Positions 51,457-56,801 of a DNA stretch of 64,000 nt are shown piece by piece (the first letter of the stretch is position 1; each line of letters begins with the position of its first letter). The DNA comes from Prasinococcaceae sp. CCMP 1430 (taxonomy: Eukaryota > Plantae > Prasinodermophyta), in NCBI GenBank assembly GCA_013416795.1, contig RQSC01000029.1:450250-514249 (forward strand). The letters are read 5' to 3'. The translations under genes were made by a program, and so were the position numbers. A model generated the notes under the pieces. The model was given only the letters and a program-made list of their open reading frames with translations. It was not told the DNA's origin and did not search any database.

Positions 51457-52917
51457 TTGGACATCGCCTCCCGAAACCCTCAGCACAGAGCACGGCGCCC
51501 GTGTGTCGCGCGTGCGTCATACGCTGCTGCTTCCGCGGCGGCGGTCGCGGCGGCCATGCTATTGGGCGCGCGTGGCGGCGTCACGTTCGCGCCTCGCTCG
51601 CTGCCGCTCGTGCACGCGCGCGCGGGGCAGCCGGTAACCGCGCGGGGCGCCCGCTCACCCGCCCGCGCGGCCGATGCCGACGCCGGCGCCGTCTCCCTTG
51701 CCGACTCAGGGCAGGAGGGCCACCACAGGCAGCGCACGCCCGAGGAACGTCGGGCACACCGGCGGCGGCACAAGCAGCGCCGCGCGGCGGCGCGGCGCGC
51801 GGCGCAAGCCGACGCACTACGAGCTGCGCGCGCTGCATGCCCACTGCGGTGGAGTGAGGACGCTGCGCTCGGCGACGAGCTGCCAGTCGACGCGCTCTGG
51901 GCGAGCGTTGAGTCGCGATGGACGGCCCCAGAGTCCACGCATCAGCCGGGGCCGCACCAGCCTGAGGGCGAGGACGGGGACGAGCAGGAAGGAGGGCAGA
52001 GTGACGTGGAGCGCTCTCTGCTTGCATTGGGCGCACTCGAGTGGGGTGCGCTACCCGCCGCAGCCGACCTGTCACGCGGGGGCGGGCTGCGGGACTCGCG
52101 CAAGGGCTCACGAGCGCGGCGCAAGTCTGCGCAGGTCGAGTCCGTGCGTGCCGCTCTGCGCCTGATGGGCTGCCTCGAGCCTGGATGCGTGGTAGTGGAC
52201 TTTGGTTGTGGCAGCGGCAATTTGTGCCTCGCGCTCGGTGCAGCACACCCGCTCGTGACGTTCGTTGGCGTCGATGGCAATGCACGCGCCGCGACCCTGC
52301 TTGCTGAGCGCGCGGCTGACGCGCAATTGAGCAATGTTGTGAGCGTGGCTGGCCGCATCGAACGCTTCTTCGACTCGGCTGCCGGACGGGACTTAGCGCG
52401 CGTGGACGCCTGTGTTGCACTCCACGTGTGCGGTGCAGGCACCGACCACTCCTTGCTCGAGGCAATTAAGAGGCAGGCGGCGTTCGTCGCACTTCCGTGC
52501 TGTGTGGGGAAGGTCACTGCCGCCAGTCCAAACAAACTCGTTGACGTCGAGAGCGGGCGAGCGGCAGCGGGTGCCGGCGGTCGTGGCCTTCGGGACGTGT
52601 CACTTAACTACCCGCGCAGCTCGTGGCTTGCCACTGCGATCGATGCCGAGGCTTACGCATCGCTGTGCGCAGCAGCAGACTTCGCAGGTCATGACGGTCT
52701 CTCGGGGTACGACAGCGAATCCGAAGAGGGCGTGGTGCCACGAGCGGCCGTGCGCGCACTCGGTGCTGACCGCCTCCACCCGGCGAGCGAGGCAGGATAC
52801 GACGTCTGGCTGGCACCAATGCCTGCAGCGAACGCGGATGTGCGTGGCACGCTGCTTCTGGGCGTGCCACAGAGAGAGGAGGCTGCGGCTTCGCGGCTGC
52901 ACGAGTGGCTCAAGTGA
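51457..52917 (+). CDS. SAM-dependent methyltransferase resembling the GSTCD C-terminal domain
   Basis: Motifs RKSAQVE, VVDFGCGSGNL, VALHVCGAGTD, LPCCVG and YPRS. Confidence 0.7.
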   Translation: MDIASRNPQHRARRPCVARASYAAASAAAVAAAMLLGARGGVTFAPRSLPLVHARAGQPVTARGARSPARAADADAGAVSLADSGQEGHHRQRTPEERRAHRRRHKQRRAAARRAAQADALRAARAACPLRWSEDAALGDELPVDALWASVESRWTAPESTHQPGPHQPEGEDGDEQEGGQSDVERSLLALGALEWGALPAAADLSRGGGLRDSRKGSRARRKSAQVESVRAALRLMGCLEPGCVVVDFGCGSGNLCLALGAAHPLVTFVGVDGNARAATLLAERAADAQLSNVVSVAGRIERFFDSAAGRDLARVDACVALHVCGAGTDHSLLEAIKRQAAFVALPCCVGKVTAASPNKLVDVESGRAAAGAGGRGLRDVSLNYPRSSWLATAIDAEAYASLCAAADFAGHDGLSGYDSESEEGVVPRAAVRALGADRLHPASEAGYDVWLAPMPAANADVRGTLLLGVPQREEAAASRLHEWLK

Positions 52918-53022: not shown

Positions 53023-55130
53023 TTACTCCGGCTCGTCTTCGGGGTACACCGCTAGCAACTGCACAACCGGGGACTGCAGCACCTCGCCCTCGTCGTTGAC
53101 GCTGCCGTCCTCCACTGTCCAGGCCTCCAGTATGTCGTCCGTGAGCACATCGCGCGCCACCCACACGTGGCCGACAAAGGATGAGCTCTGGCGAGTCTGC
53201 CCCGCCTCCAGCGTGAAATAGGAGCGCTCCACGCCTTGGAAGTCGACCCAAAGGATGCGGCAAGGCTCAGTGCGCCAATTCATGACAACGATTTCCTGGG
53301 ACTTGCCGCCCACCTGCGACTTGGCGTTCTCCAGGTCGGGCCGCACGTGGCCATCGGCGGGGGGGTCAAGTGTCCGGCCCTTGCCCTTCGAAAAATGCAC
53401 GACAGCAGGCACACGGGTCAGCAGCTGTCCACACGCAGCGCCGCAGCGCAGCGCCGAGAGTCACGCTCCGGCGCGTCAGTAGCTCGAGGCCACGATGACA
53501 AATGCACCCACGAGAGCATACGCACCTCCACACTAGTGCGCGCCTTATTGAAGGAACCTAAGCTCTCCGCCACCTCCTTTGACCCGCCCTTGAGCGCCGC
53601 GCGCCAAGCAGCGGTCATTACGCGCTCGTTTGCGGGGATTTTCCCCACCAGGCAGTGCTGCACGCGCGTCGGTGAGCCATCCGACTCGGCGTCAGAGGCC
53701 TCCTGCCTCTTCAGTAGGTCGGACAGATGCACGGTGTGCTCGTGCTGCACGGGCAGTTCGATGAGCCCCGCGGCCGCCGCCACGTCCAGGGCGAAAGCCA
53801 CGATGTCATCAGCCGACCACTCGTATTCGTCGAAGCCCTTCTCCCGCACATCGCTGTCTCTGCCGTGGAGCCCCTGCTCCTGGGCCAGCCGGTTGACCAG
53901 CCTCGCGCAAGACTTCAGCCACGAGGCCTCGAGCGCGGAGCGTTGAGCGACGAAACCTTGTGGGTAGTAGCGCACGAAGGGAAGCAGGTCGGCCGCCAGG
54001 GGGCGCGTGGCAATGTCCGCTGACTCCTTGCCACCGCCCCCGGATGCGCTCGATGCTTTCCCACCCGCCTCGCCCCCCACGCCAGAAACCTCCTCGTGCC
54101 TCAGCTGCTCAATTTCCTCCAGCGCGCGTACCTCCTCGGCATCGATCGTCCCTCCGGGCTCGACCGTGCTCTCCTGACGTTGCGAGACTCCCTCTTCGGC
54201 GCACACCTCCTCACTAGTAGCGCTGCCTCCGCCATCGCGCGCGAGCCCCGCGGCGCTCTCCCGCGGGAAGAAAAAGCGGATGTCAGGCATCTGCGTCACG
54301 CCCGCCGACTCGCATATGCTCTGGTGCTTGGCGCAGTTGATAGCGAAAGTGCGTAGCCCGTGCCCACTAAGCAGCATCCCAGCGGCCTCGACGATCGCAT
54401 CGTGCGCTTGCACGCAGTGCAGACACTCGGGCGAGTAGTACATGACGAGCATGCCGCCCCGGTTGATGCCCGCCTCGGCGTCTGCCGCGTCAGCGTCCTT
54501 TAGCACCTTGGCACTCGCACCGCCTCTCTCGCCGTCCACCGCGCCCGCCGCCGTCTCCACCTGCCGCTGTAGCCTCTGCCAATGTATTGAGGTCCGCACC
54601 TCCTCGATCCGATCCACCGCGTGCACGAAGCGCAGCTGCGCACTGGATGCGAGCAGGCCGAGGAAGGTCGCCGCTGCCGCTGCGCGCCCGACCTCCGTGC
54701 GCGTGTCGAGCGTGAGCACGTTAACGACGTTCGTCTCGTCGCTGGCCGAGTCGGCGCCGATGTCCGACGCCGCGTACACCCTGAATACCTGCCCCCCCTC
54801 CTCGAACGCGCCGCTCTGCCCAGCGCGTGCGGTCGCGTCCAGCTCCGCCCATCGGTTCCCACCGCGCCCCAGGCATGCGGGCCCAGAGAGCGACGTACAC
54901 AGCGCGTCGTCGCTTATGGCATGCTCGAGCGCGTTGGATGCGTGGCGCGTGAGACGTGCGGCCGGGAAGGGCAGCGCGGACGCTGACAGCCTGAGCGCCG
55001 CCTGCTCAGGGGGCACGGGCGCGCCCACCGTGCCGTCCGCTGCCGGGCCGCCTGCCGCGCCCGCCGCGCACAGCGCCGCGCACAGCGCTGGCGGCGCCGG
55101 CCCCCGCGGGCACGCGGCGCCGCGTGGCCG
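53023..55130 (-). CDS. Thioredoxin-fold (CLHC) protein with a C-terminal VHL beta domain; intron 53425-53525; start uncertain
   Basis: YYSPECLHC...AINCAKHQSIC...MPDIRFF. A phase-0 GT-AG intron joins it to NWRTEPCRILWVDFQGVERSYFTL...SFVGHVWVARD. Confidence 0.72.
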
Positions 55131-55523
55131 ACCGCACCACCACCCACCCCAACCCGACCTCGCCACCCCGGGCACGAACCCCAGGACCGCCCCCGCCGCG
55201 CCGTGTGTCCCCCGCCCCCACACACTGTCTTCCCCATCCGCGCATCCCAACACCCTCCTCGCTTCCCCCCACCCTTGGTGTTGGTGGGAGCCTCTTGGAA
55301 GGCCGTTTGATGAGCCTTTGTTTCAAAACCGAGCTCGCCACGCGGGCGGGCGGGGGCGCGCGCATCCCGCGCGCCACTGCGGCGGCGGGGCGCGTGCGGC
55401 AGCTGGCGGCGGAAGGAGGGGGAGGACGAGGGAGGAGGGGGGTCTGAGAGCGCGGGCGCGTAAGGGCGAAAGGGAGCTGTGTTGCCAGGGTGGGAGAGAG
55501 CGGGGGATTGGGCGGCGGCGGCG

Positions 55524-56801
55524 ATGCAAGAGCATGCCGCGCTGCTGCTCGCCTTCCTCGCCGCGGCGGGCAACAACGTCGGCAAGGCGCTGCAGAAGGA
55601 GGGCACGCTCACGCTGCCGCGGCTCTCGCTCGACCGGAGGGTGCTTGTCGAGTACGCACGCAGCACGCGCTGGCTGGCCGGTTTCCTCGCGGACATCGGG
55701 GGGGCGCTGCTGATGGTCGTCGCCGTGGCGAACGCGCCCGTCTCGCTCGTGCAGCCCATCGCAGGCTCGGGGCTCGCCGTGCTCGCGCTCTACGCGCACC
55801 TGCGCCTTGATGAGCGGCTGTCGCCTGCCGACTGGACGGCGGTAGGCTGCGTCATTGCGGGGACCTTCCTCGAGGGCCTCACGGCCGACGAGGCCGCCGA
55901 CGTCGAGCCTCCACTCCCGAGTGCTGCGCAGCTGGCCGCGTGCGCCGCGCTGGTGCTTGCGCTGCTCTATGGGTGCCATCTGTGGCTCGACGCGCCTGCG
56001 GGGTGGACGGGAGTACCGGGGGCCATCACCTCCATCGTAAAGCGCCTCGGCGGCCTCGGCAGCGGCACTGGTAGCGGTGGCGGCGATGGCGACGAGCAAA
56101 AGGTGCATGCGCGCCCCACGGGCGTCGTGCGGCGCCTAGCATTTGCCGTTGGCGACCAGGCGCGTGGCGAGCTGGACGACCTGGTGGCAGGCGCGCGGGC
56201 GGGCGCACTCTTCGGCGTATCGGCGTGCGCCACGCGGCTAGGATTCACCGCCTCCGACAGCGGCGGCGGGGCGTTGTGCGCGGCGCTTGGGATAGCGTGC
56301 AGCGTGGGGCTCTCGGCGGGGGGCTTCTACTACCAGACGCGCGCCTTCAAGGACGGCCGGGCGGTGTCTGTAGCGACGGCCGCGTCCGTGTCATCAATGC
56401 TCACTGGCGTCGTGGTGGGGCTGGCGGCGCTAGGAGAGCGCATGCCTGCAGCAATGTCCAAAAGCGTGCTCAGGCTGCTGGCGTGGGCGCTCCTCGTGGT
56501 GGGCATCGGTACGACACGCAGCTGCAGCGCATCACCTGGCTGTGCGAACACGCAAGCAGGCGCACGGGCCCGCTCCTCGCGCACGTGCATCGCGCGTTGA
56601 GTGGCTTCTGACACACGTGCACGCCGCTCCCCGCTTTACGAAGGTGTCAACGCGCGTGGCGCGAGTGCGACTGCGCTCGCGCAGGACAAGGCTTCGACCG
56701 AGGCCATGCTCGAGGGCAAGCACGTTCAACGACGCGTCAGCGGCGCGCACACGCCCGGAAAGACACCAGGGAAGGGTCTCAAGCTCGCCACGGCCGTCTG
56801 A
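55524..56801 (+). CDS. NIPA/DMT-superfamily membrane transporter; intron 56509-56643
   Basis: NVGKALQKEG, RWLAGF, APVSLVQPI, L.ERL and about 9 TM segments. Confidence 0.7.

Follow-up and report, generated by a model that had tools for sequence, protein, structure and literature searches.

In pVHL, residues S111 and H115 hydrogen-bond the 4-hydroxyl of hydroxyproline (Hyp), and human VLP/VHLL, a short cytosolic animal protein representing a recent retrogene-type copy of VHL, is a paralogue that consists of the beta domain only. A second system of relevance here is animal collagen prolyl 4-hydroxylase, an alpha2-beta2 enzyme whose beta subunit is protein disulfide isomerase (PDI). VHL beta domains are also widespread outside animals, where their function is not known, and no native plant or algal VHL beta protein was described in the literature examined; nor does the genome paper of Prasinoderma coloniale mention VHL, disulfide isomerases or hydroxylases (PMC7455551). 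Here, we analyzed a stretch of 64,000 nucleotides (nt) from Prasinococcaceae sp. CCMP 1430 (contig RQSC01000029.1, positions 450,250 to 514,249; hereafter the window), in which a minus-strand gene encodes a protein with a PDI-like thioredoxin domain and a single C-terminal VHL beta domain.

A single gene of two exons, spliced and expressed, occupies the locus and codes for a protein of approximately 660 amino acids (aa); we regard its structure and the identities of its domains as virtually certain. Both the domain architecture and the small family to which the protein belongs are new, and both are assembled from two known domains. An earlier note on this DNA had already proposed a thioredoxin–VHL beta fusion with a Hyp-binding pocket.

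Gene structure and expression

The coding sequence is spread over two minus-strand open reading frames (ORFs) that lie in different frames, one of 611 codons (53418–55253) and one of 129 codons (53023–53412). Contigs from two transcript-like assemblies of the same organism, obtained in different studies (X1 and X2), join position 53384/5 to 53525/6. The two ORFs are thus parts of one spliced mRNA, as the earlier note had supposed, and two separate transcripts are excluded by the contigs that span the exon junction. Of the intron placed there at 53425–53525, the donor at 53525 was correct; the acceptor at 53425 was not, as the RNA uses the AG at 53386. Since the X1 and X2 contigs skip 53386–53525 instead, the 101-nt intron is excluded. 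Exon 2 begins with GKGRTLDPP and is 13 residues shorter than in the earlier model, its frame and domains being unaffected. Between 53526 and 55031 the X1 and X2 contigs contain no further joint, and contigs from a marine metatranscriptome (X3) were found on both exons. The features of the gene are:

53023–53025, minus strand: stop codon TAA, from the ORF list; the transcript contigs continue without a joint to at least 52964
53026–53385, minus strand: last coding exon (120 aa), comprising a short N-terminal tail, the VHL beta sandwich and an acidic C-terminus (…YPEDEPE); joint seen in X1 and X2
53056–53301, minus strand: core of the VHL beta sandwich, residues 29–110 of the exon product, from the model strands; the Pfam match covers 53122–53298
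53161–53250, minus strand: equivalents of the five Hyp-contacting residues, from the alignment to pVHL
53248–53250, minus strand: W88 equivalent
53218–53220, minus strand: Y98 equivalent
53179–53181, minus strand: S111 equivalent
53167–53169, minus strand: H115 equivalent
53161–53163, minus strand: W117 equivalent
53386–53525, minus strand: phase 0 GT-AG intron of 140 nt (GTGCGT…AAG); X1 and X2 contigs skip exactly these bases
53526–55088, minus strand: first coding exon in its window version, 521 codons, corresponding to residues 20–540 of the 660-aa protein
53526–54245, minus strand: acidic/Gly-rich low-complexity stretch (residues ~300–380), then a helical region (~380–540)
54246–54533, minus strand: PDI-type (a-type) thioredoxin domain, with CLHC at 54414–54425, a second Cys pair (INC…C) and a cis-Pro-type MPD
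54873–54899, minus strand: Cys-loop C-T-S-L-S-G-P-A-C, the hallmark of the algal family
55047–55088, minus strand: remainder of the signal-peptide-like hydrophobic core (ALCAALCAAGAAGG); hydropathy maximum 2.2, residues 17–28
55088–55089, minus strand: site of 56 absent nt; base 55089 is the A of the ATG, and the absent bases complete the start codon and residues 2–19

The 56 nt that are absent from the window were found in two other data sets. Firstly, the Tara Oceans metagenome scaffold L001, which carries the only close database relative of the protein (P0001, 99% identical), has 56 additional bases between 55089 and 55088, which complete the ATG and encode MRTRRPRLRAGGGAAAALS. Secondly, run X16 yielded a contig of the same organism that agrees with the window over 3.2 kb with 0 mismatches and likewise carries 56 additional letters, exactly at 55088/55089. 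Because this otherwise identical contig contains them, the gap in the window most likely arose when the assembly dropped bases in a very GC-rich stretch, a strain-specific deletion being less likely. Assemblies often lose bases in extremely GC-rich stretches. At 69%, the GC content of the Tara scaffold agrees with the 69.8% published for the P. coloniale genome (PMC7455551). With the 56 bases restored, the protein comprises 660 aa.

The Tara relative has an intron of identical length (140 nt). Between its coding sequence and that of the window we counted 16 synonymous and 6 non-synonymous differences, which indicates purifying selection on the gene. Word-based protein searches with either exon retrieved the near-identical Tara copy only, and a scan of JGI metagenomes with the exon-1 product gave no match.

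The two domains and their algal family

Domains were searched and folded separately, joined sequences being used only within scripts. The last-exon translation (53026–53424) matched Pfam PF01847 with an E value of 6.8e-11 and 42.5 bits (gathering score, 21), while a PDB sequence search with the last exon returned only pVHL chains (E ~4e-5). The W88–W117 stretch of pVHL aligned without gaps, and W88, Y98, S111, H115 and W117 were all identical, just as the earlier note had it for pVHL 88–117; the domain also contains the motif SSSFVGHVWVA. An AlphaFold2 model of the VHL beta exon, for which an alignment of 141 domain segments from the representative-search matches served as input, reached a predicted local distance difference test (pLDDT) value of 85 (core 95 or more) and showed seven strands. 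In a Foldseek search of the PDB, all 50 among the matches listed were pVHL, with TM-scores of 0.59–0.67 and a root mean square deviation (rmsd) of ~2–3 Å, and superposition of the model on pVHL gave a TM-score of 0.65 at an rmsd of ~2 Å. Since this superposition was accompanied by an E value of 7e-17 for the family profile (141 relatives) against pVHL, chance resemblance is excluded. The profile search with PF01847 and the structural overlay, both named as checks in the earlier note, therefore bear out its domain assignment.

Neither VHL_C nor any other Pfam family matched the last exon at E values up to 1, and the protein terminates 45 residues past the W117 equivalent. For these reasons it has no VHL alpha domain, BC box or elongin box, an absence that the earlier note had also pointed out, and so cannot be a cullin-ligase adaptor; the alpha domain that would mark a pVHL orthologue, with its BC and cullin box binding elongin C, was not found.

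A phmmer search against 1.84 billion representatives yielded 318 proteins at E values up to 0.001 and, the Tara copy aside, no representative match was more than 44% identical. Most VHL beta proteins carry two tandem domains, and some up to twelve. Partners include the DPP IV N-terminal region with prolyl oligopeptidase, calpain, trypsin, astacin, TIR, SAM, thiol-activated cytolysin, CAP, ricin lectin, PASTA, LRR, SH3 and, in diatoms, PUB. Among the named members are proteins of a chytrid, a basidiomycete, Paulinella and Actinoplanes, and the atlas clusters are mostly from Verrucomicrobiota, Planctomycetota and Actinomycetota. The fusion of VHL beta to the DPP IV N-terminal region and S9 prolyl oligopeptidase occurs repeatedly in ESM Atlas clusters of Planctomycetota and Verrucomicrobiota (P0125 and P0129 are named with the clusters for these and for the diatom PUB fusions). 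An extensin fusion among the relatives was excluded as a low-complexity match (48 bits vs. a 105-bit cut-off).

When the 141 aligned domains were compared at the pocket columns, W was found in 140, Y in 111, T in 116 and S in 24, H in 136 and W in 138; the full W-Y-[S/T]-H-W set was present in 105 of these diverse domains, and N78, W88, H115 and W117 are nearly invariant across the VHL beta family. This family-wide conservation argues that the cavity is functional throughout. The fully conserved pocket of the earlier note is hence present with its five residues, but it is not special to the algal protein, since 105 of the 141 domains, many of them apparently bacterial, keep it. A HIF-type reader specially retained in this alga can therefore no longer be argued from the pocket.

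As a side observation, two proteins combine VHL beta with TIR: P0020, a Paulinella chromatophora transcript, has SAM-TIR and three VHL beta domains, and P0097 has TIR, a low-complexity region and two VHL beta domains. In such proteins, VHL beta is possibly a sensor module beside an immune-type TIR effector.

The domain encoded by 54246–54533 has a CxHC-type active site, and its MPD motif aligns with the YPT of PDI. When it was compared with the PDB by phmmer, the best match was TXNDC5 (1.9e-8), followed by PDI (1e-4) and then PDIL2-3, ERdj5, PDIA3, P5 and QSOX; with NCBIfam TIGR01126 (pdi_dom) it gave an E value of 8.7e-5 and 22.8 bits, far under the cut-off of 107. Judged by these matches to oxidoreductases of the endoplasmic reticulum (ER), the upstream domain is PDI-like, in agreement with the CLHC thioredoxin domain of the earlier note.

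Downstream of this domain, an acidic/Gly-rich insertion of ~80 residues (54008–54245) appears to interrupt the thioredoxin fold after strand 4, so that strand 5 and helix 4 may lie displaced in the first part of the helical region. By BLAST, the region after the insertion gave a weak collinear match to helix 4 of the thioredoxin domain of contig L004 (E 0.14). Searches of the spacer and of the N-terminal part against Pfam, NCBIfam and the PDB gave no match, and a single-sequence AlphaFold2 model of the 540-aa exon-1 product had a pLDDT of 38.5, with no fold obtained for either part. Language-model neighbours of the spacer (0.90 or less) were thioredoxin/QSOX-like and amount to no more than a lead, and those of the N-terminal part (0.75) are meaningless.

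The closest single-domain matches of the protein were short ORF fragments on eukaryote-like contigs. We defined a family by a leader, a C-x-[ST]-x-x-G-P-x-C loop and a single C-terminal VHL beta domain with the motif S-[ST]-F-x-x-H-[VI]-W-x-A. The window protein falls under this definition, as do L002, L004, L010, L011, L013, L025–L028, P0138, P0145 and P0159–P0161. The Cys-loop is found in every member whose N-terminal part is known and, among the 161 proteins searched, in this family only. Thioredoxin domains were compared locally, as a global MAFFT alignment of family members misaligned them.

In the contigs L004, L005 and L006 (GC 45%), a CPHC thioredoxin exon (PF00085, 47.6 bits) is followed 450 nt downstream on the same strand by a VHL beta exon (48.4 bits); GT-AG introns link the exons in one open frame that ends with a stop, and a C-S-S-L-L-G-P-I-C loop lies upstream. 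In P0145, P0159, P0160, P0161 and L010, the Cys-loop is followed by a thioredoxin-like domain, in which CxxC has been lost while the second Cys pair and the cis-Pro region remain, and then by VHL beta; in P0161, a leader is present as well. Thioredoxin is absent from a second subfamily, which combines the leader, the loop (C-T-S-x-x-G-P-x-C) and VHL beta: P0138/L011, P0139, P0058/L002, L013 and L025–L028, the contigs being up to 166 kb long and coming from Antarctic-lake-type and Tara samples. P0138 is encoded on a 92-kb contig adjoining a PAP-fibrillin gene and therefore comes from a photosynthetic eukaryote. As read from these sequences, the constant core of the family is leader, Cys-loop and VHL beta, and the thioredoxin module is an accessory that is redox-active, redox-dead or absent; it is predicted to be redox-active in Prasinoderma (CLHC) and L004 (CPHC). 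Taken over all these contigs, the fusion is not a one-off and belongs to a previously undescribed small family in uncultured marine and other algae.

Two neighbouring genes were identified in the window. The convergent one (51457–52917, plus strand) codes for a protein resembling class I methyltransferases, with Methyltransf_32/31 in the Tara copy; ~100 nt separate its 3′ end from that of the thioredoxin–VHL gene, and one X2 contig covers both. The divergent one (55479–56600, plus strand) encodes a NIPA-type magnesium-transporter-like membrane protein, with ~440 nt between the two start codons and the same layout on the Tara scaffold; these two genes may share a bidirectional promoter. As in the window, the gene on L001 lies between those for a NIPA-like transporter and a methyltransferase.

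Proposed function and alternatives

The reading we favour is that of a secretory oxidoreductase docked onto proline- or hydroxyproline-containing clients. The protein would work in the ER, in the later secretory pathway, or in the wall or outside the cell. Its VHL beta domain would dock client segments that contain proline or Hyp, for example those of hydroxyproline-rich wall glycoproteins, and the CLHC domain, brought beside the docked client, would make or reshuffle disulfides. We give this full mechanism a probability of about 0.45. A proline-type ligand is suggested because both hydroxyl-bonding residues of pVHL (S/T and H) are kept, because VHL beta domains are repeatedly fused to proline-specific peptidases and because Hyp is abundant in the secretory proteins of green algae.

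With regard to location, the leader consists of an Arg-rich n-region followed by an uncharged Ala/Leu/Cys core, residues 2–19 forming the n-region and the beginning of the core; beyond it, the sole segment resembling a transmembrane helix by hydropathy is a weak one at residues 444–467. An Arg-rich n-region and a hydrophobic core are also present in the Prasinoderma relative, P0138, P0161 and the L002 ORF, so that all four available family N-termini are signal-peptide-like. Since the leader recurs in the wild relative and three further family members, we consider a location in the secretory pathway fairly probable. This setting is supported by the thioredoxin domain being closest to ER oxidoreductases and by the extracellular-type partners of VHL beta elsewhere (CAP, ricin lectin, cytolysin, astacin, trypsin and PASTA). 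A pVHL orthologue would be cytosolic or nuclear and free of a signal peptide; here, the relatives have a predicted leader. To our knowledge, green algae have no HIF, and of the two roles offered by the earlier note the predicted leader fits the one in glycoprotein quality control better than cytosolic oxygen sensing. Because none of the usual polysaccharide synthases was found in the Prasinoderma genome, whose authors left the wall chemistry open (PMC7455551), a glycoprotein wall is plausible in this alga.

Several points weigh against the docked-oxidoreductase mechanism. Hyp binding by the VHL beta domain is putative, being drawn from conservation and fold, and the pocket, as a family-wide signature, is no independent evidence for Hyp reading; many of its carriers are apparently bacterial by their atlas taxa, where a Hyp ligand is not established, and the function of prokaryotic VHL beta domains is stated as unknown (PMC7736814). 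On the redox side, the search with PF00085 suggested by the earlier note gave 23.2 bits, just under the gathering score of 23.5. Further, relatives have lost CxxC or the entire thioredoxin domain, and redox chemistry is therefore not the core function of the family, and the spacer of ~160 aa is explained neither by a domain nor by a fold. As for the N-terminus, the window has no in-frame ATG upstream of the middle of the thioredoxin domain, the start codon being missing, the 5′ end of the mRNA lies beyond contig coverage (contigs end at 55031), and the Tara scaffold has an in-frame ATG 52 codons earlier. Finally, no KDEL or HDEL for ER retrieval was found at the C-terminus, which reads …EDEPE.

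The alternative that survives best, although we consider it somewhat unlikely, takes VHL beta to be a general peptide- or ligand-binding beta-sandwich that does not discriminate Hyp from proline, or whose ligand is something else, such as a sugar or another protein; the five residues would then be kept for a conserved cavity of the fold and not for reading a hydroxyl. The near-invariance of N78, W88, H115 and W117 and the recurrence of the whole pocket in 105 of 141 domains would be expected of such a binder, as would its widely varied partners (TIR, SAM, LRR, SH3, calpain, cytolysin and PUB). It would also agree with the open function of the prokaryotic domains and with the scores of the algal domain, which are 43–52 bits against microbial VHL beta domains and 27 bits against human pVHL. 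What a general cavity leaves unexplained is that the hydroxyl-bonding residues, S111 (as S or T) and H115, are kept in nearly all members, that fusions to proline-specific peptidases recur and point to proline-type ligands, and that the green-algal secretory pathway is rich in Hyp.

A second alternative, which we hold to be quite improbable, concerns the leader: this could be a transit peptide for the chloroplast or a twin-arginine signal for the thylakoid lumen (T-R-R-P-R-L-R type with an Ala-rich core), in which case the protein would be a thiol-disulfide protein of the plastid, its VHL beta domain docking onto a partner there. The leader is indeed rich in Arg, Ala and Gly, with an RR pair ahead of the hydrophobic stretch, its Ala-rich core is weakly hydrophobic (maximum 2.2) and KDEL is lacking; moreover, the frame on the Tara scaffold stays open for 52 further R/G-rich codons up to the other ATG. 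However, these 52 codons show 3 non-synonymous and 1 synonymous difference to the Tara relative, against 6 and 16 in the coding sequence, a pattern that, small as the numbers are, resembles non-coding DNA and fits a 5′ untranslated region. In addition, the solved structures closest to the thioredoxin domain all belong to ER enzymes, and the leaders of P0138 and L002 resemble classical signal peptides, with hydropathy values of 2.5–2.7. That the gene is dead or N-terminally truncated in the source genome, the 56-nt loss removing the start codon and shifting the upstream frame so that the source strain would make no signal peptide and perhaps no protein, is very unlikely in spite of the missing ATG, given the 56 letters in the identical X16 contig, the proneness of this extremely GC-rich stretch to assembly dropout, and a remaining gene that is intact, transcribed and spliced.

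Beyond the docked-oxidoreductase mechanism, a wider proposal would have VHL beta as an ancient reader of Hyp peptides that predates HIF signalling, with the algal family as its secretory version, targeting a PDI-type oxidoreductase to hydroxyproline-rich wall glycoproteins; we consider this unlikely as a whole. In a bolder variant, an oxygen-dependent prolyl hydroxylase of the ER would act on the Cys-loop itself, which strictly co-occurs with VHL beta and has an invariant G-P, and the VHL beta domain of the same protein would then bind the hydroxylated loop; if true, this would make a self-contained oxygen/redox switch in the secretory pathway.

If Hyp binding proves true, Hyp reading would predate oxygen sensing in animals and reach beyond it, the family would provide the first candidate reader for plant- and algal-type hydroxyproline-rich glycoproteins, and a small natural Hyp-binding module would be available for tools. 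Without Hyp binding, the domain architecture would still stand as clean and new, and so would the small new family of proteins. In either case, the gene gives a clean experimental handle on the role of VHL beta outside animals, in a testable setting: a single copy with an intact pocket and no ligase half, accompanied by a leader and a PDI-type neighbour, in a Hyp-rich secretory lineage without HIF.

Comparison with known systems

The algal domain shares with pVHL the seven-stranded beta-sandwich and the five identical pocket residues. It differs in that identity is ~25%, in that there is no alpha domain or BC box to recruit elongin C and cullin 2, and in the signal-peptide-like leader and the fused thioredoxin domain; by score, it is nearer to the microbial domains. 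VLP/VHLL likewise has VHL beta without the alpha domain, and is thus a reader without ligase function, whereas the algal protein has 660 aa, several domains and a leader peptide. Microbial VHL beta proteins belong to the same domain family, carry the same pocket signature and likewise have the domain added on, as a module, to one with an enzymatic or effector role. Unlike the algal protein with its single copy, they mostly contain two or more tandem copies, the Cys-loop is confined to the algal family, and none of the 149 other representatives listed has a canonical thioredoxin domain, P0145 being a family member with only a degenerate one that lacks CxxC.

On the redox side, the algal protein resembles the ER PDI family (TXNDC5/ERp46, the a-domain of PDIA1, P5, ERdj5 and Trx1 of QSOX) in its CxHC site, its cis-Pro-type motif and its N-terminal leader, and TXNDC5-type domains also in the extra Cys pair (…NC…C…) ahead of the cis-Pro. 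In contrast to these enzymes, it has one catalytic domain, no recognisable b or b′ domain and no KDEL, and it carries the low-complexity insertion of ~80 aa and the C-terminal VHL beta domain. The closest functional analogy is collagen prolyl 4-hydroxylase, where a PDI-type module is likewise coupled to a binder of proline-rich secretory substrates. In the animal enzyme, the partner of PDI is a hydroxylase with its own peptide-substrate-binding domain, held non-covalently, whereas the algal gene, which has no hydroxylase domain, fuses a putative reader of the hydroxylated product covalently to its PDI-type module.

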